This document shows positions 3,001-63,948 of a stretch of DNA of 64,000 bases, piece after piece (position 1 is the stretch's first letter; each line of letters starts with the position of its first letter). The DNA is taken from the NCBI GenBank assembly GCA_965235115.1, contig OZ249451.1, forward strand, positions 1,798,001-1,862,000, in the 5' to 3' direction. The stretch comes from Laetmonice hystrix. Lineage: Eukaryota. Both the position numbers and the translations under genes were made by a program. Below the pieces are notes generated by a model. That model did no database searches and was not told where the DNA came from. It was given only the letters and a program-made list of their open reading frames with translations.

Positions 3001-6000
3001 CCTTAAGATAAATAAAATTATTTTATTTTGTATGATACGCCTACCGCTTACCAGTTCAAATGGTTACTTTAAAATGCCTGTTCGAAATGATTTACTAATA
3101 CTTTTTAAATTTGTATTAATCAGGCTCCGCTGGAGCTCCTGGTCAACGTGGTGAACGTGGTGAGGCCGGACCAGCTGGCCAACCAGGATCAGCCGGACCA
3201 TCAGGACCTCAGGGCCAGAGAGGAGAGTCAGGAGCACCTGGCACCGCTGGTCAACGTGGAGAGGCAGGACAGCGTGGCGAGCCTGGTTCTGCTGGTTCAC
3301 CTGGCAGGCCCGGCGAAAGAGGACAGCCTGGCTCTGCTGGCCCAGCTGGACCACAGGGACCACAAGGATCAAGAGGAGAACGTGGTGAGGCAGGACCAAG
3401 AGGAGAGCAAGGCGCACGTGGAGAAGCAGGCACGCCAGGATCTGCAGGGACACCAGGATCAGCTGGCCCTGCTGGATCTCCAGGCCAACAGGGACAACGT
3501 GGAGAACGCGGAGAAGCTGGAGCAGCAGGAACCCCTGGACAACGCGGAGAGGCCGGTCAAAGAGGAGAGGCTGGAGCCCCTGGGTCCGCAGGAAGTCCAG
3601 GACAGAGAGGTGAAGCTGGTGCACCAGGATCCCAAGGACAACGCGGAGAAGCTGGTCCACAAGGTGGCCGTGGTGAAGCTGGACAGAGAGGTGAAGCTGG
3701 AACTCCAGGAAGAGCGGGTGAGCGTGGTGAGCCTGGAACACCAGGCCGCGATGGATCAGCTGGAAGGCCAGGGCCCCCAGGACCTGCCGGATCCCAAGGA
3801 CCTGCTGGAAGTCGGGGAGAACCAGGCACACCAGGTTCACAGGGAGCACGAGGAGAGAGGGGAGAACGTGGAGAACCTGGCACTGCTGGACGTCCTGGAG
3901 AACGTGGACAGGCCGGATCTCCTGGTTCACAGGGATCGCAGGGTCAACAAGGCGCTCGAGGAGAGCCTGGTACCCGTGGTCAATCTGGCGAACGGGGAGA
4001 GCCTGGAACTGCTGGATCACCAGGTAAGTTGCCCTATTTTCAAATCTTTTGCGGATCACATCATTTATGTTTATAAGTGTATAAATCTGAATGGATATTT
4101 CAGTATGTAATACTAAAATATATATTTTTCCTTATAGGATCTGCTGGACCTGCTGGACCACAGGGACCAAGAGGTGAAGTTGGTCCTCAAGGACCAGTAG
4201 GAGCTTCAGGAGCCAGAGGAGAACCAGGAGCAGCAGGATCACCAGGACGACCTGCAGAAAGGGGTGCACAAGGAGAACAAGGAGCAGCAGGCCCTGCTGG
4301 ACCAGCTGGAGCTCCAGGTCAAGCTGGAACCCCTGGACAACGTGGCGAACCCGGCACAGCTGGAAGTCCTGGTTCTCCTGGACCTCAAGGTCAACGTGGA
4401 GAACGTGGTCCTGATGGGCAGGCAGGAAGTGCAGGAACACCAGGTTCACAAGGTCAACGTGGTGAGAGAGGTGAAGCAGGTCCACAAGGTGCTAGAGGAG
4501 AGGCTGGAACTGCTGGAACACCTGGTAGCCGCGGCGAACCTGGTAAATATGCTATAAAATTTGTTGTTCTATAAAGTTTTAAGTAACAGGAGAAAATAAG
4601 AAAATCTAAGTGCATTGTGCCATAACAGTATACATACACTGTGTTTCAGTAAAAGCCTTTTGGAAAAATAGTTTGGATCTGCACCGCCTTACACTGTTGA
4701 TGAAACTGTAATATGTTTCTTTCAGGAACACCTGGATCACCTGGTCCTCAGGGAAGTCGAGGACTCCCAGGTAGCGCTGGACAGGCTGGAGCAGCTGGTC
4801 CTGCTGGAGAGCGGGGACAGCGTGGAGAACCAGGAGCGAGAGGAGAAGCCGGTGAAAGAGGTGGGCAAGGTGAGCGTGGTCAAGCAGGAACCCCTGGGTC
4901 CCCCGGACAGCAAGGACAACGAGGTGAGGCCGGGCCCCAGGGAGCTCGAGGCGAGGCAGGGCAGGCTGGATCTCCAGGAACTGCTGGAGCACCAGGAACA
5001 CGAGGTGAACGTGGTGAACCAGGAACACGTGGACAGGCTGGTACGCCTGGATCCCCTGGTCAACGTGGTGAACGAGGAGAAGCTGGACCACAAGGCTCTG
5101 CTGGAACACCTGGGTCTCAAGGACAACGTGGTGAAACGGGCGGTCGTGGAGAGGCTGGACCTCGTGGAGCACCAGGCCAACGAGGAGAACCAGGTTATTA
5201 TACTAATTGCAATTCATACCAGACATATGATTTTACGTTACGCTTAGAAAAGCAAAATGCCACTGAAACCTATTAACTAGACTTTGCACCCGAGTATTCT
5301 ATTTTCTTATTATCTAATACACAACGTTATGAACACATTAGTTTAGTGTGTGTTGCCCTCTTGCAAATCCATATAGTTAATATGGAGCGAAAGACCAGAT
5401 ATAGTATTTGTTATTTTCTGCAAATTCAAGGTACCGCTGGTACTCCTGGATCACCTGGACAGCGTGGTGAGCCTGGCTCAGCTGGAGCAGCAGGACCCGC
5501 TGGCCCATCTGGACCACAAGGACAAAGAGGCGAGGCTGGTACAGCTGGACAACGTGGCGAGCAGGGCGCAAGAGGTGAGGCTGGTGCACCTGGATCTGAC
5601 GGTCGCCCAGGAGAGAGAGGTGAGGCAGGTTCCCCAGGTAGCCCAGGACAACAGGGATCACCAGGTTCACAAGGTCAACGAGGAGAGGCCGGCCAAAGAG
5701 GAGAGGCTGGTCCAGCAGGTGAACCCGGAACACCAGGAACAGCAGGCAGACAAGGAGAGAGAGGTCTTCCTGGTCAACCAGGAACAGATGGACAACCAGG
5801 TGCTCGTGGTGAAGCTGGACCAGCTGGACCACAAGGTCAGAGAGGTGAACCTGGTACCCGTGGTGAGGCAGGCGCTCCTGGTACCCCAGGACGTGCTGGA
5901 GAACGTGGCCAACCAGGATCTGCAGGATCTCAAGGATCGCAGGGACGCCGAGGTGAACAGGGTGGACGTGGTGAGCAAGGAGCCCGTGGAGAACCAGGTT

Positions 6001-9000
6001 CTGCTGGATCACCAGGTACGTACTACTCATTTCAATTTGCCACCAAGTTTGGTAAATGAAAGAAAGGTGTCTGCTCAATATTTTTCTTCCCATTTTATGA
6101 AAATCATCAAGAGCACTTAAAATGTCATTTTCAATGTAGGTTCACCTGGCGAGGCTGGTCCACAGGGACCTCAAGGTGCTGCAGGCAGACCAGGACCAGC
6201 TGGATCAGCTGGACAAGATGGACAACGAGGTGAACGAGGCGAGGCTGGAGCACCAGGTACGCCTGGATCTCAGGGTCAACCAGGAGCTCGTGGCCAGGAT
6301 GGTGAAGCCGGACAACCAGGACGTCAAGGAGAACGTGGAGAACCAGGCCCTGCTGGACAAGCAGGTTCTGCAGGAAGTCCAGGACAGCGAGGCGAACCCG
6401 GTCAGCGTGGCCAGCGTGGCGAACGCGGAGAGGCGGGATCCCCAGGATCTGCAGGACAACAAGGTTCAAGGGGTGAACCCGGATCACCGGGATCCGCTGG
6501 TCCACAAGGAGCACGGGGTGAGGCTGGAGAAAGAGGTGCCGATGGTTCTCCAGGAACCCCAGGTCAACGAGGAGAAGCTGGAACCCCTGGAACAGCAGGT
6601 AGACAAGGTGAAAGAGGTTTACCTGGAACCGCTGGTCAGCCTGGCTCACCTGGTCAACGTGGTGAACCAGGTACCCCTGGAGGCCAAGGTGAACGTGGTG
6701 AAGCCGGCCCAGCAGGACCCCAAGGATCAAGAGGAGAAGCAGGTAAGAAAATATTTTTAGTAGTTGGACTCAGATTTTCTGTTCTTTGACACTTGATTAT
6801 CAATATTAATGTTAATTGAAATACACATTCAAATATATTGTTTTAATTGTGAAATACAGGCGCTGATGGAAGCCCAGGATCTCCTGGACAACGCGGTGAG
6901 CGTGGAGAGCCTGGCCAGGCAGGAACACCTGGATCAGCAGGACAAAGGGGAGCGCGAGGAGAGGCTGGAGCCCGTGGAGAACCAGGTGCCCGTGGCGAGC
7001 CAGGAACGCCGGGATCGCAGGGATCACCAGGCTCACCAGGTCCCGCAGGTCAAAGAGGAGAGGCTGGCCCTGCAGGCAGTGCAGGTCAGGCTGGACCCGC
7101 CGGACCACAAGGACCTCAAGGACAGCGTGGTGAACAAGGAGCACGTGGAGAGGCAGGTGAGGCTGGCCGTGCTGGAGAAAGAGGCCAGCCAGGGTCTCCA
7201 GGACAAGCAGGATCCCAGGGTGCTAGAGGTGAACGTGGAGAACAGGGAGCAAGAGGAGAGGCTGGAACTCCTGGTTCCCCAGGACAGCGGGGAGAACCAG
7301 GCACACCAGGATCTGCAGGTAAATGGCAGCTAATATTTGAATTTTTATTATATATCCCAAATTTAAGATTTTGTCATCAGCATCTTCATTATCAATAACA
7401 ACATTAATACTACTATTCTTTTAATATTTTCATGATGATTTTATTCTATCTTCTATCTATCGAATCTATGTTACATTCCCTATAATTATCAGGATATCCA
7501 TCGCTATCCTTCCTTCTTTTAGCAGTACTGATGCCATTTTTACTTAATTAATTTACATTAAATTCTACTGCCTAATAGGCCAAGCTGGTCAAGCTGGTCC
7601 ACAAGGGCCACGGGGTGAGCGTGGAGAAGCAGGGCAGCCAGGATCCGCAGGAGAAGCAGGGCAGCCTGGATCCAGAGGAGAAGCAGGACCCGCAGGACCC
7701 CAGGGTGGCCGTGGAGAGGCAGGTGCTAGAGGCCAAGCTGGCGCCCCAGGATCCCCAGGCCAGCGAGGAGAGAGAGGCGAACCAGGCACGGCCGGATCAG
7801 CTGGACCTCAAGGGCCACAAGGTTCCCGTGGAGAAGCAGGACAGCGAGGTGAACAAGGCGCTCGTGGAGAAGCAGGGACACCAGGATCACAGGGTGGCCC
7901 AGGTCAACCAGGACCTGCTGGACCAGCAGGTGCCCCTGGCCAAAGAGGTGAGCGGGGAGAGGCTGGCTCTGCGGGAACTCCTGGACAACGTGGCGAACCA
8001 GGACAGCGTGGTGAGGCAGGAACACCAGGATCACAAGGTCAACGTGGTGAACCAGGCCAAGATGGATCAGCAGGGGCACCAGGACAGGCTGGTGCTCAGG
8101 GTCCTCGTGGAGAAAGAGGAGAGCAAGGAGGCCCGGGAGCAGCTGGAACGCCAGGAGGACGAGGAGAACCAGGAGCTCGTGGTGAACCAGGAACGGCTGG
8201 CTCACCAGGCCGACCAGGTTCACAAGGTGCAAGAGGTGAGCCAGGACAGCGTGGAGAACAAGGACAACGAGGAGAAGCTGGTAGCCCAGGACAAGCAGGT
8301 ATGTTGTTGATATTAAAATGATACTTGGAGAAATACCAGAGTGAACTTAATGTGGATGACATTTCCCATAGCAAGCTATTCTTCAATTCGTCTTACTACA
8401 TTGAAACATTTACTGTCACAACCAAATTAAAACCAACTATAATCACGTCTAATCAGATTGATCTTTCAACATCATTACATGACAGATCGTTATGATTCTC
8501 ATTGACTCACAGGGTCGGCTGGACAGCCTGGCGGACAAGGACAACGTGGTGAACGGGGAGAAGCCGGACCAAGTGGGGCACCTGGATCACCTGGGCAACA
8601 AGGTTCTCGTGGAGAGCCAGGCGCGGCTGGAACCCCTGGCCAGCGTGGTGAACAAGGCGCACGAGGAGAAGCAGGTACAGCAGGCTCCGCTGGACAAAGA
8701 GGAGAACGAGGTGAAGCAGGCGCCCCAGGATCAGCTGGACAGGCTGGTCCTCAGGGACCGCGAGGAGAGCGTGGCGAAGCTGGCACTCCAGGTTCACGAG
8801 GTGAAGCCGGATCTCCGGGTGAAGCGGGCAGACAGGGTGAACGTGGTGCACCAGGTTCAGATGGTCAACCTGGAGCAGCAGGACCTCAGGTATGTATGGC
8901 AAATTTCTGAAGGAAAAGGAAACACAGGACAGAAATACTTTACAAGTATTCGATACCCCAGTGGTAAAAAAAAACTATGCAATGCTCTATCTTTGTCTTT

Positions 9001-12000
9001 CTTTTGTTGTATTGTAATAATTTATTTAGTATCAAATTGTATTCAATAAATGTCGAAAATAGTTTATAAAGTATTAAACAGGGAATAATACAACACAATG
9101 CTTCTCTTATTAAGGGACAACGTGGAGAACGTGGAGAACCAGGTTCTGCTGGAGCTAGAGGAGAGGCTGGTGCACCAGGTACTCCTGGTGAACGTGGCCA
9201 AGCTGGAACACCTGGGTCACCTGGACAAGCTGGACCACAGGGACAACGAGGAGAAGCAGGTCCAGGTGGCCAGCGAGGAGAGCGAGGAGAGGCTGGTTCA
9301 GCTGGAACACCAGGATCTCGTGGAGAACCCGGTATTTATCTCGTACTTTTATATATTACAAGATAAAGACTCTATATAAACAGTAAAATAGTCAACTTGG
9401 TTTAAGGAGTAGAAATAGCTAAACCACTCAAACAGTCAGCTTTGCCAGCTCACGGTTATTTCATATGATTTATTTTTTAACGATACAACTTTTAACCTAG
9501 TATTGTCTCTGCTTCCCTAGGATCTCCTGGACCAGCAGGTCCACAAGGTGCCCGAGGAGAAGCTGGACCCCAAGGACCAGCAGGGGCCAGAGGCGAAGCT
9601 GGACCTGCAGGACAGTCTGGTTCAGATGGCCGTCCAGGCTCCCCTGGTCAGCGTGGAGAACAAGGCCCACGTGGTGAAGCTGGTGCTGATGGAACACCAG
9701 GCCAGCGTGGAGAACGTGGAGAACCAGGTACAGCTGGGCAAGCGGGATCACCAGGTTCACAAGGACAACGAGGAGAGAGAGGCGAAGCAGGACCACAGGG
9801 ATCTCGTGGTGAGCCAGGAACCCCTGGAAGTGCAGGAGGACGTGGAGAACGTGGAGAACAAGGAGCTCCTGGATCAGCAGGGTCACCTGGACCACAAGGA
9901 CAAGCTGGATCACCTGGTCAACGTGGTGAACCAGGACAACGAGGTGAGCCTGGTCAGGCGGGACCACAAGGTCCTAGAGGTGAGGCAGGAGAGGCCGGTT
10001 CTCCAGGAACGCCTGGGTCACAAGGAGCCAGAGGTGAAGCTGGACAACGAGGAGCAGCTGGACAACGTGGAGAGCAAGGACAGCGTGGTGAGGCAGGACA
10101 ACCTGGATCGGCTGGCCCTGCTGGACCTGCTGGACCACAAGGCCAGAGAGGTGAGGCAGGAGCGGCGGGTCAGGCAGGTGCTGCAGGACAACCTGGACAA
10201 CAGGGCGCCCGAGGCGAGGCTGGTGCTGCTGGAACACCTGGACAACGTGGAGAAGCTGGACAACGTGGGGAGGCTGGTACCCCAGGCACGCCTGGTAGAC
10301 AGGGAGAGCGAGGAGAAGCAGGACCAGCAGGACCTGCAGGACAAGCTGGATCGCCAGGTCAGCGAGGAGAACAAGGTGCACGAGGAGAACAAGGAGCAAG
10401 AGGAGAGTCTGGCTCACCTGGAACGCCTGGTCAAAGAGGTGAACCAGGAACACCAGGAACTCCAGGTTCCCAAGGACAACGAGGAGAACAGGGTGAAGCG
10501 GGTCGACGTGGTGAACCAGGACAGAGAGGAGAAGACGGCTCCCCAGGTGCACCTGGATCTCGTGGAGAACCAGGTAACGTATTATAACCAATATTAAACA
10601 TATATGCTTTATTGTAAAGTAAATTGGCTACTTACGTATATACAATTTCAGAACCTGCCAATTTCAAATTGGATTTTAATATTGTGAACAGGTAGCCAAG
10701 GCGGCCCAGGATCACCAGGACAGAGAGGAGAAGCTGGTCCACAAGGAGCACCAGGTGAATCTGGTCCTGCTGGACCTGCAGGACAGCGTGGTGAACAAGG
10801 CGCCAGAGGAGAGCCTGGAGCAGATGGCCAAGCCGGACAACGTGGTGAAGCAGGTACACCTGGTACAGCTGGAAGGCCGGGAGAAAGAGGTCAAGCAGGA
10901 GCTGCAGGAGGCCCTGGACCACAAGGCCCACGTGGTGAACGTGGAGAAGGAGGAACTCCCGGACAGAGAGGGCAACCAGGTGAACGAGGAGAACCAGGTA
11001 CCGCAGGACAGGCTGGCCGACAGGGAGAAAGAGGTGAAGCTGGTGCCCCTGGTTCAGCTGGACAAGCAGGGTCCCCAGGCCAACGTGGACAACGTGGGGA
11101 GGCTGGAACCCCAGGAAGTCAAGGACAACGTGGAGAAGCTGGACCTAGAGGGGAGCCAGGAACCCCTGGCTCTCAGGGTGCACGCGGAGAACCTGGAACC
11201 CAAGGACAAGCTGGTGGCCCAGGCCCACAAGGACAACGTGGCGAGGCAGGAGCTCGTGGTGAAGCTGGACAGCCTGGTAGTCAGGGAGCCCGAGGTGAAG
11301 CTGGTTCTCCCGGACAAGCAGGACAAAGAGGCGAACCAGGACCTGCTGGGCCACAGGGTCCACAGGGTACCCAAGGACAACGTGGTGAGGCAGGCCAACG
11401 TGGTGAGGCTGGACAACCAGGAAGTCAGGGAGCTCGCGGAGAACCAGGAGAGGCAGGACGTGCAGGTGACGTATATTTTAGCGTACTCACCTGGGTCCAA
11501 ACGTTGTGTTTCTTCAGAATGATGAGCAGAACGTTTTAAAATTATATGAATTTAGTAACGCTTAATTTCATAATGACACATGCTTATATTATTATATCCG
11601 TTTATCAGGTACACCTGGTAGTGCCGGACCTCAAGGTCAGCGAGGAGAGGCAGGTCAACGAGGACAAGATGGATCAGCTGGCAGGCCAGGATCCCCAGGA
11701 CAACGCGGAGAACAAGGCCAACGTGGAGAACCTGGTCAGGATGGATCTGCAGGAAGTCCGGGAGCGCCGGGACAACGGGGAGAACCTGGCGCACAAGGAT
11801 CCCAAGGAGCGCCCGGTGCTGCAGGTCCGCAAGGACAACGTGGCGAACAAGGAGCCCGCGGTGAATCTGGGCAGCCTGGTAGTGCAGGACAGCGAGGAGA
11901 GGCAGGAGCACCTGGTCAGCGTGGAGAGCGTGGTGAGGCTGGCAGCCCTGGTGGACCTGGTCAGGCAGGACAACAGGGAGCACGAGGCGAACCAGGTGAA

Positions 12001-15000
12001 CAAGGCCAACGAGGTGAAGCTGGAGCTCCAGGATCTCAAGGTCAAAGAGGAGAACAAGGTAAGGTGTCACCCTCTCAAGGAATCAGGAGGTCACATATAT
12101 AAAACGATTATAAATACCACTAAAAAACAACCCTCATTGGAAAAAGTGTCAATGTAATACAATATTATATTATATTTTAACTTTTATAGGATCACCGGGT
12201 ACACCTGGATCTGCTGGTCAACGAGGAGAAGCAGGACCTCAAGGTGCCCGAGGTGAACCAGGAACAGCTGGTAGCCCTGGACAGCGTGGAGAACAAGGCC
12301 AACGTGGAGAGGCTGGACAGCGCGGCACAGCAGGCGAGCGAGGACAGCCTGGTTCACCTGGTCAGAGAGGCCAGAGAGGTGAGGCCGGCCAACCAGGACC
12401 AGCTGGACCTGATGGACAACCTGGATCACCTGGTACACGTGGAGAACGTGGAGAACGTGGAGAAGCAGGCCAGCGTGGAGAAGCTGGATCTGCTGGAGCA
12501 CCAGGATCCGCAGGACCACAGGGACCACAGGGAAGTCGCGGAGAAGCAGGGCCACAAGGACAACGTGGAGAACAGGGTGCAAGGTTTGTATTTCACTTTA
12601 TTACTATTATTATATAATTTCATTATTTTATAATCCACATAAAAGCATGCACACCGGTCTTGACGTTATGGAAATTGTGTTGAACAGCCGTTCATTTATT
12701 TCATTTCTAAAACAGAGGCGAGGCTGGCTCAGCTGGCACTCCAGGATCAAGAGGAGAGCCTGGCGCCCCGGGATCAAGTGGTCAACGTGGAGAGGCAGGA
12801 CCGCAAGGCGCACCTGGAACCCCTGGCAGTCAGGGACAACAGGGACAGCGTGGAGAACAAGGTGCCCGTGGTGAGGCTGGTGAACGTGGTCAGGCAGGTC
12901 AGCCTGGCTCACCTGGACAACGGGGACAACGTGGTGAGGCTGGTCCGCAAGGTCCATCTGGATCCGCTGGTACACCAGGACAGAGAGGAGAGCGTGGAGA
13001 AGGAGGACAACGGGGCGAACCAGGATCTCCAGGTTTGTGTTGATTGTAATGTCAAGTTAATTTACGAATGAACATGGTGAGAAAACGTTTTAGCTTATGA
13101 ATGATGCCATCGGTATTGGCATTCCATGACACTTGGAATTTATCTTATTTTTATAATCTAGGGTCTGCTGGACAACCTGGATCACCTGGCCAACGTGGTG
13201 AACGAGGTGAACCAGGTCAAGCTGGTGCAGCAGGACAGCCAGGGCCACAAGGAGCTCGAGGCGAAGCTGGGCAAGCAGGAGAGGCCGGACCACGCGGTGA
13301 AGCTGGACAACGTGGTGAGGCTGGAACACCTGGTAGTCAAGGACAGCGGGGTGAACAAGGCGCACAAGGCCAGCCTGGAACACCTGGTAGTCAAGGACAG
13401 CGGGGTGAGCGAGGTGAAGCTGGAACGGCTGGAACGCCTGGCCAACGTGGAGAACAAGGAGCACGAGGTGAACCTGGCCGGGATGGATCACCTGGGTCCC
13501 CTGGATCCCGAGGTGAACCTGGATCAGCCGGATCACCAGGCAGTCAAGGCTCACCGGGTCCCCGAGGCGAACCTGGTCAACGTGGTGAACCAGGCCAGGC
13601 AGGCGAACCTGGATCCCCTGGATCTCAAGGAGAGAGGGGTGAAAGAGGCCCACAAGGAGGAAGAGGACTGCCAGGTTCACAAGGACAACGAGGCGAACAA
13701 GGCGGAGCAGGAACCCAAGGAGCTAGAGGAGAGCAAGGAGCTAGAGGAGAAGCTGGACAGCCTGGATCCGCAGGTAAGTGTACATGGAAATTCACATTTT
13801 GAGGTATAATATGATATTTTGCTTCAGCACAATATTTTTATTGAATGGAATTAAAACAATACATCTGTTTTCAGGACAACGAGGCGCACAAGGGCCACAA
13901 GGACAGCGTGGCGAGGCAGGCACACAAGGCAGTCCTGGTCAAGCTGGTTCACCAGGACCTCAGGGACAACGTGGTGAAGCCGGTCAGCGTGGTGCGGATG
14001 GACGACCTGGAGCACCAGGGCAACGTGGAGAACCAGGAACACCTGGATCCCAAGGCCAACGTGGTGAACGGGGAGAAGCTGGGCAGGCAGGTACATCCGG
14101 ACAACCCGGACCTCAGGGACCACAGGGACAACGTGGTGAACAGGGAGCACGTGGTGAGGCTGGTCAGTCCGGAGAGCCTGGACAGCCTGGACCTCAGGGA
14201 CCACGTGGAGAGTCCGGTCTTGCTGGACCAGCTGGACAACCAGGATCACCTGGACAAGCTGGAGAAGCTGGCACACCTGGGCAGAGAGGAGAACAAGGTC
14301 AACAAGGCGCCCAAGGACAACGGGGTGAAGCAGGTTCTGCTGGAGCGAGAGGAGAGGCTGGACCACAAGGACCTCGTGGTGAGGCTGGACAGGCTGGTAC
14401 ACCAGGACAGAGAGGAGAACAAGGTGCCCGTGGAGAACAAGGTGCTCGTGGAGAGTCTGGTGAACCCGGAAGACAAGGTACGGACATTATCTCCCATATT
14501 GTAGCTCCCCGTTATCCCTAATTATCTTAAGAATAAGGCGCGGGATTTCTGGGTTGTATTTCGAAAAGCATTAAAAAAATTTGAAGGATCAATTTCCTTA
14601 GACATCTGTTACACTTATGTTCCTCTTGAAATATATTGAATTAAGCACTAAAGTTTTTATGTTAAGGTGGATATCTGAAGAGAACAACAGCTAATTTTAC
14701 CGGGTTTTCTTGTGAGCAGGATCAGCTGGCAGTCCCGGATCGCCTGGGCAGCGTGGAGAGGCGGGATCCCCAGGATCACAGGGTAGCAGAGGAGAACCTG
14801 GACAACGTGGAGAGGCTGGACCGGCAGGCTCCCCTGGACAACGTGGCGAGAGAGGACAGGACGGACAACCTGGCTCGGCTGGACCACAGGGACCACAAGG
14901 GCCACGTGGTGAACCTGGAGCCCAGGGATCCGCTGGTCAACGTGGTGAACCTGGACTTGCTGGTTCTCCTGGTCAGCGTGGTGAGCGTGGTGAAGCTGGG

Positions 15001-18000
15001 TCTGCAGGTCTAAGTGGACCTGCTGGACCTGCAGGACAACGTGGACAACCAGGATCAAGAGGAGAGCCAGGACAGCGCGGTGAACCTGGAAGCCCAGGTT
15101 CTCAGGGAGAGCGTGGACAAGCAGGGTCACCTGGTCTGCAGGGTAGACGAGGTGAGGCTGGACAACAGGGCCGTCAAGGAGAACGTGGACTACCAGGAGA
15201 GCAAGGACAACGTGGTGAAGGTGGACAGCGAGGCGAGATTGGGCCTGGAGGACCTCCAGGTATGCATTTTTCTTATTAATTTCTTATTTATGCAGTTTGC
15301 ACTGTAGAAAATTGCCACAAAAATAGAAAAGTGAAACCTAAAATCTGACAAAACAACGACCTAGTTTGCTCAATATGCCTGTGTGCTAATTAACATGTAT
15401 TTTTTATTTAGTTCTTGACATTTCTTTTCTACTATTAAATGGCAAGATTCTAGCGGATGTTTGGCCTATACTAATCCTATAATTCCTTGGATGCAGGTTC
15501 CGCCGGACAAGCTGGACCACCAGGACAACGTGGCGAAGCCGGGCCAAGTGGACAACCTGGCCCAGCAGGACAACCAGGACCTCAAGGCTCACGAGGTGAA
15601 TCCGGACAGCGTGGAGAACAAGGATCGCGAGGAGAAGCTGGACCACAAGGACCTCCCGGAGAACAAGGTTCACAGGGAACACTTGGAGAACCAGGACCTC
15701 CGGGACAAAGTGGAGGTATTGGTCAACCGGGACCTGCCGGTCCAAGAGGAGAAGGCGGACCACCAGGTCAACGTGGTGAAGCTGGCCCACCTGGGCAACG
15801 TGGAGAAGGTGGAAGACCAGGTCCGTCCGGACCGCCTGGTCAACGTGGAGAGGCTGGACCGGCTGGACCTTCGGGAGCTATAGGTGAAAGTGGTCCACAG
15901 GGTACCCGTGGAGAGCCTGGACCTGCAGGCCAGCGTGGAGAAGCAGGTGAAAGAGGACAACCAGGTTTAGGTGGACCTCTTGGACAACCTGGACCTGCCG
16001 GTCCACTAGGTCCAAGCGGCCCTCGAGGAGAGGCTGGGTTACCTGGCGAAGCGGGACCAGCTGGACCAGCAGGACAAAGAGGACAGCCTGGCCCACCTGG
16101 GCCTAGCGGACCTCAGGGAGAACGAGGGTCAGGTGGACCACCAGGACCATCTGGACCACTTGGACCCCCTGGACCTAGTGGTCCACGCGGTGAGGTCGGA
16201 GGACCTGGCCAATCAGGTCCACCTGGCGGCACTGGACTTCCAGGCCCACAAGGACAACGTGGTGAGCAAGGTCAACGAGGAGAAGCTGGACCACCTGGAC
16301 CGAGAGGGCAACCTGGACCTGGTGGACCACTCGGCCCGGCAGGACCTAGAGGTGAGCGTGGAGAAGGCGGGCCTCTTGGGCCTAGTGGACCACCCGGAGA
16401 ATCTGGTCCATCAGGGCCAGCTGGCGAAAGAGGTCCATCTGGACAGTCAGGTCAGCCTGGACGACCGGGTCCACCAGGACCACTTGGACCAGCAGGACCG
16501 GCAGGACCTCAAGGTGAGCGCGGACCACCTGGGTCACAGGGACCGAGAGGAGAAGGTGGCGAGCGTGGACCTGCTGGCGAACGAGGTGGACCTGGTCTCC
16601 GAGGATCCAGTGGAGAACGTGGAGGTGCTGGACCACCTGGGCCACAAGGACGTGCAGGTGAGTCCCATTCTGTGTAAATAACGCTATTTGAAACAACATT
16701 ATGATATATTTTATTCTATTCAATCGTTTAACCAATCTTTACTTTTGTTTTCAAAAGGCGAACGTGGACAACTTGGCAGTCCTGGTGCGACCGGCCAGAG
16801 AGGTCCACCTGGAGAATCTGGAAATGCTGGACCAAGAGGAGAGAGAGGTCCAGCTGGTCCCTCCGGACAGAACGGTTTGGGTGGACCTCCTGGTGGTCCT
16901 GGTGAGCCTGGACCTCAAGGACAGCGTGGAGAACGTGGAGAACGTGGATCACAGGGAGAACAAGGACGTCCAGGTCAGTTCTTCTAGTCTAGTCACAAAA
17001 ATAAATAAATCTACTTTTTGTTTTCTTTATATTCTTTAGATTTCACTAAAGAAATCTGAGTACAACAAAGCACAACAAAAATACTGACACCATGGTGTAA
17101 AAAAAATCCAGGTGAGCAAGGCCAGGCTGGACCACTTGGTCCCAATGGAAGACCGGGATCAACGGGATCGACTGGACCACGGGGACCTCCGGGACCAGAG
17201 GGCCGAGCCGGCCCCTCTGGCCCACGTGGACAGGTTGGATCACAAGGAACTAGAGGAGAACAAGGTACAAGAGGAGAACAAGGAGGGCGAGGACAGCCTG
17301 GACGGCCAGGAGAGAGAGGAAGCCCAGGTAAGCAACATTCCAGATTATGTCACAGTGTTTACCAAGAAAACTCCAGACCTACGTGTTATCAACTGAGGAT
17401 TTATAAGATTATGTCACAGTGTTTACCAAGAAAACTCCAGACCTACGTGTTATCAACTGAGGATTTATAAGATTATGTCACAGTGTTTACCAAGAAAACT
17501 CCAGACCTACGTGTTATCAACTGGGGATTTATAAGATTATGTCACAGTGTTTACCAAGAAAACTCCAGACCTACGTGTTATCAACTGAGGATTTATAAGA
17601 TTATGTCACAGTGTTTACCAAGAAAACTCCAGACCTACGTGTTATCAACTGAGGATTTATAAGGTGTCATTCTGATACCCCTGAAGCTATTTCATTATTT
17701 TCTTTTATTGTATACAGGAGCAACTGGATCTACGGGCTCAGAAGGAGCAACTGGGCCATCGGGTCCACAAGGCCGCAGAGGAGGACCTGGCCCACGTGGT
17801 CCTAACGGTCTCACTGGATCTAATGGCAGACCTGGCTTTACTGGAGCCACTGGAGTCAGAGGTTCGTTAGTTTAATAATTGTACACACACCATGCATTTA
17901 GTATAGGAACGAGCATACATTGAATTCCGCGCGTGAAAGACATGCACGTTAAAAACGATCTCTCATGCCCAATATCCGTGTTTACCTGCAGGACCGAGAG

Positions 18001-19345
18001 GCGGAGATGGAAATGCGGGACCACGTGGACCGACGGGAGCCACGGGACCGACAGGCCGCATGGGTAGGACCGGCGCCACTGGACCGGTTGGTCGTGACGG
18101 CCGCACTGGTGTCCGTGGTCCGACGGGAGTCATTGGCCCACGTGGTGCACGTGGACAGGCTGGTCTTGGTGCTCTTGGTAAGTCATCTATTTACCATTCT
18201 GTCTCTTGGATCTAACGAACTTCACTCAGAGGGGAGATGTCACAATTACATGATAGCAAGGTTTCCGCCAGAGGGTAAAATGGGTAAAATTCCGTACCCT
18301 AAAATTTTTCCAGGGTACGGATCCGTACCCTCAAAATCGTTGGTTAACCATTTTTCCATGAAGTGATAAAAAACATCCCCATGATGCCTTGATCAACTTG
18401 AAGGAATCAAATATAATGTTGTACAGTATAATGCAGTCTTTATTTGATTAATTCAGATACACCCCTCCTCTGGTCCGTACCCTAAATTTTTTTCTGGCGG
18501 AAACCCTGGACAGTCTAACTTGTCAACGGCAGTGGTGGTGGGGGGGGGGGGGGAAATGCCCTGAGATTTATTTTTTAATTCTGGTTGCGCTTCTGGTTCA
18601 TGGCTAATTAGGTCATCTGGCCAAATAAGAACCCGTTCTTTTTACGTCATGGGTTATTTAATTTTTAATTATACTCGCAAATATATTTCCCCAAAAAAAT
18701 GATTTTAAAAATTAATATTTGCCCTTTTTACAACGAATCTTTCGTCCTCTTTTTCTAGCTCTTGGACAGAAGATGGCGAAGGGAGAACAAGACGTTATGC
18801 GAGAGCAGAACATCTTGAAGAAGATGTCCGCTAAATCCAACACGTTCGCCGTGGGAATGGCAGCGTGGGCTGGTATCGTCACAATCGCCCTCATAGTCAT
18901 CGTGGCGATCGTCTACAGAAGAATCAAGTCGAATCGCCCAGGATCGTCGGCCGAGTCCGTGTATTCCGACGCAGAGTCAGGTTCCAACTCAGGTTCCTCC
19001 TTTGCCTACGACCGTTCCAGCGTTGTTGACATTGCGTCCAGTTGCGGGGATGGGGAGACGAACGACGGCTTCACAGAGGACCTACCTACAGCTCCGGTAG
19101 CCATGCCGGCCGAGGTCCGACAATTGGACAGCGAACTGAACGAGAAAACACTACGACACATTGCCGGACTCCACGAGGAGGGTGACGAGGACGACGACGA
19201 CGCCGCGTCTGTCGCCGACGTGCACGGTCAAGGTCAAAACAAGGGCGACGCCAACCACCTGACGACGTCCCGTCATCAGTTCCGCCATGCGCCTTTCAAA
19301 GGACTGCACGTGAACGAGAACCCAGGAGGGTCATCCTTCCTCTAA
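1..19345 (+). CDS. Gene A: giant membrane-anchored (type I) collagen, 5'-partial; 28 exons, about 4,770 aa in window, about 1,520 Gly-X-Y triplets + neck + TM + 142-aa cytoplasmic tail
   Basis: Hand-derived exons: <1-699, 861-1175, 1358-1789, 1896-2228, 2347-2886, 3124-4023, 4138-4542, 4726-5193, 5431-6015, 6140-6742, 6860-7318, 7579-8298, 8513-8889, 9115-9331, 9521-10573, 10692-11465, 11609-12058, 12190-12583, 12716-13032, 13162-13773, 13875-14477, 14720-15259, 15497-16657, 16758-16973, 17112-17327, 17718-17861, 17992-18177, 18759-19345 (TAA). All introns are GT-AG. 25 of 27 are phase 1 (all but the last split a Gly codon). Internal collagen exons are multiples of 9 nt, singly or as pairs around the phase-0/2 introns. 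The spliced frame is a Gly-X-Y repeat ([15 protein letters not shown]). Confidence 0.93.
17342..17661. repeat. Intronic minisatellite, 5 x 64 bp
   Basis: Unit agattatgtcacagtgtttaccaagaaaactccagacctacgtgttatcaactgaggatttata starts at 17342, 17406, 17470, 17534 and 17598. Copies are near identical. Confidence 0.95.
18257..18508. mobile_element. MITE-like element in the last intron of gene A
   Basis: 15-bp terminal inverted repeats caaggtttccgccag / ctggcggaaaccctg (14/15 match) and repeated internal ccgtaccct motifs in both orientations. No target-site duplication found. Confidence 0.55.
18759..19345 (+). CDS. Gene A terminal non-collagenous exon: neck, transmembrane helix, cytoplasmic tail ending ...GGSSFL
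   Basis: Acceptor ttttctag|CT at 18758/18759 joins in phase 1 to the exon ending ...GQAGLGAL-G|gtaagt (18177). It reads [58 protein letters not shown]..., the same frame as ORF 18719..19345. Confidence 0.9.
18845..18916 (+). other. Predicted transmembrane helix of collagen A ([24 protein letters not shown])
   Basis: 24 uncharged, mostly aliphatic residues followed directly by RRIK (positive-inside rule gives a cytoplasmic C-terminus). Confidence 0.88.

Positions 19346-25790: not shown

Positions 25791-63948
<38,158 letters not shown>

Follow-up and report, generated by a model that had tools for sequence, protein, structure and literature searches.

An alanine in place of a helix glycine at the same level of two giant collagen chains of Laetmonice hystrix, and the non-glycine state of the site in relatives

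Analysis of a window of 64,000 nucleotides from Laetmonice hystrix (NCBI GenBank assembly GCA_965235115.1, contig OZ249451.1, positions 1,798,001 to 1,862,000 of the forward strand; coordinates below are those of the window) showed two collagen genes of great length in a tail-to-tail arrangement. Gene A (+) starts before position 1 and runs to 18170, and gene B (-) starts beyond 64000 and runs down to about 26700; both were delimited by a six-frame scan for Gly-X-Y runs and by exon models. In each gene one glycine of the triple helix is replaced by alanine, at the same distance from the helix end. The glycine at every third residue is held to be inviolable in long collagen rods, and single-glycine replacements are known mostly from disease alleles and short peptides. 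Here a natural, fixed and expressed replacement by alanine or serine was found in both chain types, within a near-perfect helix of about 2,880 triplets. The analysis demonstrates where this break lies, that it is expressed and conserved, and in which sequence motif it stands. The reading that we favour, with modest confidence, is an ancient and conserved substitution-type interruption that is older than the duplication of A and B, locally loosened, and buffered by arginine and glutamate.

In gene A, the alanine is encoded by GCA at 4254-4256 (+), in the context GGA CGA CCT GCA GAA AGG GGT GCA CAA (G-R-P-A-E-R-G-A-Q), and AGG at 4260-4262 (+) encodes the arginine that occupies position Y of the substituted A-E-R triplet. 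The alanine stands at triplet 14 of a 405-nucleotide exon of 45 triplets (4138-4542, +), which has phase-1 introns on both sides and boundaries confirmed by a spliced contig. In gene B, the alanine is encoded by GCT at 43916-43918 (-), in the context G-R-D-A-Q-R-G-E-Q, with the arginine of A-Q-R encoded by CGT at 43910-43912 (-) and followed by G-E-Q. The corresponding 405-nucleotide block of gene B is divided into a 216-nucleotide exon (43819-44034, -), again with alanine at triplet 14, and a 189-nucleotide exon (43489-43677, -).

The original prediction had placed both alanines at triplet 14 of this block (GCA in A, GCT in B), 313 triplets C-terminal of a G-X-G break present in both chains, and had seen no further break in the roughly 1,150 triplets that remain. 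Codon reading and a scripted scan of the glycine register over the spliced frames bore this out. The shared one-residue-deletion break (G1G type) is G-R-G-E in gene A (513-524, +; G-R-G at 513-521) and G-I-G-T in gene B (48521-48532, -; G-I-G at 48524-48532). Both alanines follow it by 938 residues (313 perfect triplets). The distance from each of them to the end of the helix is exactly 3,458 residues, and the 1,152 triplets that come after are unbroken. Sites are named below by the number of residues counted from the helix end, hence site 3458. The alanine keeps the register in every chain, being a pure substitution without change of length, and regular in-register triplets stand on both sides of it, as in a substitution-type interruption. 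Gene A carries only four and gene B only two substitution breaks in about 2,880 triplets, and both of those in B coincide with breaks in A, so that chance co-location of the two alanines is negligible; many scattered and unshared glycine substitutions, which would have made this one unremarkable, were not found. The similarity of flanks that had been pointed out (GRx-AxR-GxQ) is present but modest, with 4 of 12 residues identical; ranked by identity count it is in the top 14%, and by weighted score in the top 5.7%.

Expression was seen in one of four public runs holding DNA of the window, all from one sample that is probably the source of the assembly. This run (X4) is a transcriptome, as its contigs are spliced; its kind is listed as unknown. 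An X4 contig joins 3121-4021, 4136-4541, 4725-5191 and 5429-6000 with zero differing letters across the alanine exon, and supports the gene A exons 3124-4023, 4138-4542, 4726-5193 and 5431-6015. The GCA codon is thus present unchanged in the spliced message; RNA support within the window covers gene A only. No variant was listed at 4254-4256 in the four runs of this one sample.

Explicit exon models were built for both genes and extended with flanking DNA of the same contig. Introns are nearly all of phase 1, with the glycine codon split as G|GN, and exon lengths of A and B sum identically, block by block (405 = 216 + 189; 900 = 252 + 648; 1053 = 594 + 459). Both reading frames, of about 8,640 codons each, contain no stop codon, and the helix is entirely free of lysine. 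The helix of gene A has 8,639 residues and that of gene B 8,637 or 8,648, depending on one 33-nucleotide segment, the larger number being favoured. At 0.286 nm per residue the helix would measure about 2.47 micrometres, which is within the micrometre scale of annelid cuticle collagen, a protein with two chain types and a helix of about 2.5 micrometres. Very long annelid collagens of 7,719-8,859 amino acids have been described in alvinellids, with one in an earthworm (PMC12403961), and this is likely the gene family of A and B. A search of the animal's own genome with the tail protein returned A and B only. Since their exon sums are colinear and their breaks fall at identical positions throughout the C-terminal 5,964 residues, these two distinct genes would encode genetically distinct chains able to share one register.

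Several features of the exon models were noted besides. Among otherwise GT-AG introns, gene B has a GC-AG intron at about 31429-31434 (-; donor G|GCAAGT), and two more GC donors occur in gene A upstream of the window. A 360-nucleotide exon of gene A (-10805 to -10446) stands against 207 + 144 = 351 nucleotides in gene B (61630-62323, -), so that the chains differ by one triplet in this block. An insertion of a single residue (G-E-Q-P-G-P-A) occurs in gene B near the N-terminal end, at about 68760, past the end of the window.

Relatives were sought with several queries. When the alanine exon was compared by phmmer with 1.84 billion representatives, the matches were type IV-like and microbial collagens, not one of which was lysine-free and arginine-rich, and word-indexed searches with the 134-residue alanine exon and the 299-residue upstream exon gave generic collagen-like matches only (MARCO, otolin). 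The non-collagenous tail exon, which is not of low complexity, recovered 16 homologues when used as a profile of A and B, and a scan of metagenomes with an alignment around the site added further relatives. Informative at the site were five sequences, which represent at least four organisms besides this one. S2 is a genomic contig (ENA ERZ25767047) that was walked upstream through four loci and has the exon sizes of gene A over 40 exons; S3 is a 28.3-kb spliced transcript (ENA ERZ3792507); L035 and L036 are transcripts of 12.5 kb and 12.4 kb; and L037 is a 10-kb genomic contig with exons of 432, 333, 540, 900, 405, 468, 585, 603, 459, 720 and 594 nucleotides. The sequences P0391 and P0392 come from the closest relative found, with both chain types represented, and L029, a 3.7-kb Logan contig, ends 63 residues short of site 3458. 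In the environmental transcript contigs (L027-L029, L032-L036), the long called genes were all wrong-frame open reading frames with GTG starts, and the true collagen frame, open for up to 24 kb, was left uncalled.

S2, S3 and L035 are of type A, with in-register identities to A of 0.52, 0.41 and 0.37 against about 0.2 to B. L036 is of type B, with the transmembrane segment TWF...VVIYKRL and an identity of 0.29 to B against 0.24 to A, and L037 is A-like, judged by exon structure alone. As both chain types occur among the relatives, the duplication of A and B goes back to before these organisms diverged. Landmark distances of 938, 1053 and 1344 residues, together with the 2,114 residues up to the end of the helix, establish that the sites are homologous. 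In S2 and S3, the break at 3458 is accompanied by the G-X-G at 4396; in L035, breaks are separated by 1053 and 938 residues; and in L036, two breaks lie at a distance of 1344, with exactly 2,114 residues between the second and the helix end. In both L037 and S2, the break stands at triplet 14 of a 405-nucleotide exon.

At site 3458, the sequence is GRP-AER-GAQ in A (GCA), GRD-AQR-GEQ in B (GCT), GRP-AQR-GEQ in S2 (GCA), GAP-ALR-GEQ in S3 (GCT), GRP-ASR-GEQ in L036 (GCA), GAA-SPR-GER in L035 (TCA) and GLA-SER-GEQ in L037 (TCT). The site is therefore non-glycine in 7 of 7 sequences (alanine 5, serine 2), with arginine in Y in all seven. Glycine in orthologues, named beforehand as an observation that would undo the prediction, was found in none of the five relatives (alanine in 3, serine in 2). 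Since L035, L036 and L037 fail the alanine-containing scan pattern, their sampling was unbiased for alanine. Three of the relatives with the break (S3, L035 and L036) are spliced transcripts. Both serine codons are TCN, one step from GCN (alanine) and two from GGN (glycine); judged by these codons, the site has changed again in two lineages without return to glycine, the serine being derived from alanine. A return from alanine to glycine would need one C to G change only.

The persistence of the site stands in a strongly diverged background. Non-glycine positions of A and B compared in register are 0.23-0.25 identical, with 0.13-0.21 in shifted controls, and ordinary alanines of A are matched by alanine in B in 27% of cases (arginine, 23%). 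As A and B are near-randomised in this way, the identity of position rests on counting and exon structure and not on local alignment. In the last 2,000 or so helix residues (A about 9,500-18,170; B about 26,700-39,000), a slide of one triplet gave a higher likeness (0.26-0.33) than the exon register (0.16-0.19), and likeness was lower again at a slide of two triplets in this C-terminal quarter; such behaviour suggests a local periodicity or charge pattern that is displaced in one chain relative to the other.

A motif is common to the breaks. Across five sites, 21 of 21 substituted triplets have arginine in Y, against a background of 23-26%, and X of the following triplet is glutamate in 18 of 20. 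In A, B, S2 and S3, 8 of the 12 breaks are followed by R-G-E-Q, which has a background frequency of 1-2.5%; the consensus is [A/S]-x-R-G-E-Q. Arginine in Y stabilises the helix about as well as hydroxyproline (PMC3790195), and natural interruptions tend to have salt-bridge-forming Yaa-Gly-Xaa triplets alongside, which have been described as molecular clamps (PMC11923368). The published clamp is K-G-E/D (PMC11923368); beside the present breaks the charge pair is usually R-G-E, but R-G-A at the gene A site.

Five breaks per chain were mapped in about 2,880 triplets, three of them at common positions. Gene A has serine at sites 7399 (S-E-R) and 6547 (S-T-R), where gene B has glycine, and gene B has G-I-G at 5964, where gene A has no break. 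At 5449, gene A has serine (S-Q-R, at -3422, outside the window) and gene B leucine (L-G-R; CTT, 52749-52751, -). Both chains have G-X-G at 4396 and alanine at 3458 (A-E-R in A, A-Q-R in B). Among the relatives, the G-X-G landmark is kept at the same spacing in S2, S3 and L035, and site 5449 is serine in S2, alanine in L035 and glycine in S3. The N-terminal third of S3 showed one-residue-short breaks at 6556 (GAP-A-R-GQQ), 6182 (GES-RP-GPA) and 5964 (GAP-GI-GRP). The break at 6556 aligns with the serine site 6547 of gene A at an offset of +10, so that a break is kept there among A-type chains in a different form.

The length of gene B depends on 54667-54699 (-), an in-frame segment of 33 nucleotides that starts with GT and ends with AG, for which a tiny intron is conceivable. 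The intron model was rejected and coding sequence preferred, because reading the segment as coding places the G-I-G break of B at 5,964, the same place as the G-I-G of the spliced S3. The 11 residues are present in S3 and B and missing from A and S2; as B and S3 carry 11 residues more than A, the exact correspondence in length between the two chains of this genome is limited to the C-terminal 5,964 residues. An origin of the breaks by internal duplication was unsupported, as no self-identity peak was present at any shift; the maximum (z = 3.4) was not at shifts of 852, 1098, 1344 or 1991. Break contexts are 0.17-0.40 identical to each other, with a null 95th percentile of 0.375, and the short motif is still clearly common to them.

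Under the reading that we favour, the alanine would form a substitution interruption of the type G-x-y-A-x-y-G that lies at one axial level in the two chains, about 0.99 micrometre short of their C-terminal end. The break would have arisen before the duplication of A and B, the site remaining non-glycine since then (alanine, or serine from alanine). Methyl side chains would be unable to pack in the helix core, so that direct inter-chain hydrogen bonds would be lost there, and the break would probably be a short, locally loosened or under-wound stretch and not a kink. The arginine in Y of the substituted triplet, usually with Gly-Glu-Gln next, may buffer the damage as an Arg/Glu clamp. Selection, beyond mere tolerance, would then hold the site non-glycine.

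The alanine had been proposed as a functional soft spot (bend, binding or processing site). There is strong support for the part of this proposal that takes the shared site to be retained and not noise, and a bend is the least likely of its readings. A peptide with glycine replaced by alanine in all chains loses about 35 degrees C in melting temperature yet shows hardly any curvature, whereas the bend at a G-Q-G break can reach 85 degrees (PMC9898670). By this analogy a sharp bend at the alanine is unlikely, and the site would be a buffered, loosened spot and not a hinge. A change of length or register, as in the kinks of C1q and mannose-binding lectin (MBL), is absent at the alanine and present at the G-X-G 938 residues upstream, which may be the better candidate for a bend.

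A serious rival, which we regard as possible and rather less probable, is that the break is a tolerated relic, a glycine-to-alanine change fixed before the duplication in a permissive context (arginine in Y, G-E-Q next) and drifting since then among small residues. The break would have no role of its own, and selection would act on the buffering context only, for as long as the break persists. Evidence for this comes from a sister site, 2114, which has glycine in both genes of the window (gene A: GGA, 9835-9837, +, in G-G-R-G-E-R; gene B: GGA, 38325-38327, -, in GRD-GLA-GEQ). The six other sequences that cover it (S2, S3, L027, L029, L036 and L039) all have alanine, within the motif A-x-R-G-E-Q/R, and include the B-type L036. 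The site is thus Gly/Gly here and alanine in both A-type and B-type sequences elsewhere, which suggests a parallel reversion to glycine in both chains of one genome. In L039 (Ga0099808_1664258), a transcript fragment, two consecutive broken triplets were seen at nucleotides 1912-1917 (GRD-APR-AER-GEQ-GEQ); this double break best matches site 2114 of A-type chains.

Site 2114 is one of several points that weigh against an interruption held by selection. Breaks with the same motif come and go between lineages: with glycine at 2114 in A and B and at 5449 in S3, where the context G-Q-R-G-E-Q is nevertheless kept, a break can evidently be lost without obvious cost. The residue at broken sites varies among alanine, serine and leucine. 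The flanks of site 3458 beyond the motif are not unusually conserved, no enrichment of imino acids or charge was found near it, and the triplet that follows it in gene A is G-A-Q, not G-E-Q. A third giant collagen of the same genome, rich in threonine (contig C1, 30235845-30256705, +; 21 exons, phase-1 introns), has a helix of 5,179 amino acids with all breaks in the first 306 residues and 1,624 perfect triplets after them, so that long helices need no breaks. It was dropped as an outgroup, because a counterpart of the break is missing from it and its exons follow a pattern that is not colinear, which leaves the homology of positions uncertain. Retention in seven sequences cannot alone reject neutrality, and the evolutionary depth of the relatives was gauged by sequence divergence alone. 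Co-assembly of A and B in one trimer, on which a shared axial level would depend, is likewise inferred solely from the fact that the two keep exactly in step over the C-terminal 5,964 residues.

Against drift, site 3458 is non-glycine in all seven sequences, including both paralogues, despite near-randomised ordinary positions and a one-step route to glycine, and the two lineages that changed went from alanine to serine and not to glycine. The matched states of site 2114 hint, in a single instance, that the chains of one trimer may co-evolve, which would be coordinated and not free drift.

A wider reading, doubtful at present, is that the [A/S]-x-R-G-E-Q and G-X-G breaks together make a conserved positional code, in which site states co-evolve between the chains of a trimer and the breaks are placed as compliant or recognition points. 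The break sites lie at about 0.60, 0.99, 1.26, 1.56, 1.71 and 1.87 micrometres from the membrane-proximal end. If such a code exists, the sites could set how molecules of 2.5 micrometres fold, starting at the C-terminal end, and how they flex or register in a crossed-fibre cuticle, and the spacing of breaks would be a design parameter of the material.

Less likely again is a recognition site, in which the break exists to expose the opened [A/S]-x-R-G-E-Q motif to another molecule, such as a trypsin-like or processing protease cutting after arginine, a receptor, or an enzyme that makes cross-links through the exposed glutamine. One short motif does occur at five separate sites, with R-G-E-Q enriched 30- to 60-fold after breaks; natural interruptions are known to serve in ligand binding and degradation (PMC10765305), and a lysine-free helix makes unusual cross-link chemistry conceivable. 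The glutamate is, however, missing from the gene A site (A-E-R-G-A-Q), the B site at 5449 reads L-G-R-G-A-Q, and extracted cuticle collagen is described as very long, which gives no hint of routine cleavage at intervals of about 1 micrometre (PMC11766948). A furin-type R-x-x-R in the flanks was discarded, as the spacing by inspection is R-x-x-x-R.

An artefact (faulty assembly or base calling, a wrongly placed splice site or a pseudo-exon) is effectively refuted already, because two independent codons (GCA and GCT) occur in two genes, the spliced contig reproduces exon and codon exactly, five sequences of other data sets have a break in the same place and neither long frame contains a stop, with nothing found in its favour beyond the fact that a highly repetitive gene invites misassembly in principle.

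The finding reveals no new mechanism. For peptide chemists, the ancient interruption that we favour would be a natural, rescued glycine-substitution context to set against the sites of osteogenesis imperfecta, and for materials science the mapped breaks offer candidate soft points in a protein rod that ranks among the longest known. For annotators, the spacings of 1053, 938 and 1344 residues provide landmarks for aligning low-complexity genes between species.

Among known systems, the peptide 1CAG, with glycine replaced by alanine in all three chains, is locally unwound and melts at 29 C against 64 C (PMC10765305, PMC9898670). Like the present site, it has alanine at one level in all chains with perfect triplets around and loses direct hydrogen bonds, and, should A and B co-assemble, it would serve as the closest physical model that the site has; unlike it, 1CAG is a synthetic Pro-Hyp-Gly homotrimer, and the present context is G-R-P / A-x-R / G-E-Q inside a helix of 8,640 residues. 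The interruptions of non-fibrillar collagens (GnG classes, PMC11923368) are also native and conserved, with a basic-acidic Yaa-Gly-Xaa beside the break, as is seen at most of the present breaks though not at the gene A site. They differ in that their clamp is K-G-E/D and the putative one here is R-G-E in a lysine-free helix, and the break here is a pure substitution with length unchanged. Collagen IV has 23 interruptions in a far shorter helix, an extreme contrast in density to five per about 2,880 triplets.

The stalk kinks of C1q and MBL are likewise conserved single-site imperfections that form a mechanically special point in a collagen rod. The C chain of C1q is said to have alanine in place of glycine at its kink. 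The kinks of C1q (an extra residue) and MBL (G-Q-G) involve a change of length or register and a visible bend (PMC9898670, PMC5902488), whereas the same in-register substitution in both chains here predicts loosening without register shift; the closer analogue of the MBL kink is the G-X-G at 513-521 and 48524-48532. The glycine substitutions of osteogenesis imperfecta and Alport syndrome share with this site a small residue in place of an obligatory glycine, with local destabilisation and slower folding. Those are rare, deleterious alleles of one chain, and here the alanine is not a variable allele but fixed in both paralogues, expressed, and retained in other organisms. The giant collagens of alvinellids and an earthworm are in the same size class (7,719-8,859 amino acids, against about 9,000 here), and their report gives repeat counts and proline content only, with interruptions, their positions and their conservation not described (PMC12403961). 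Natural collagen interruptions, their destabilising effect and their charged flanks are already known; new are the map of a few breaks in giant chains, their conservation across paralogues and organisms, and the rule of arginine in Y followed by G-E-Q.

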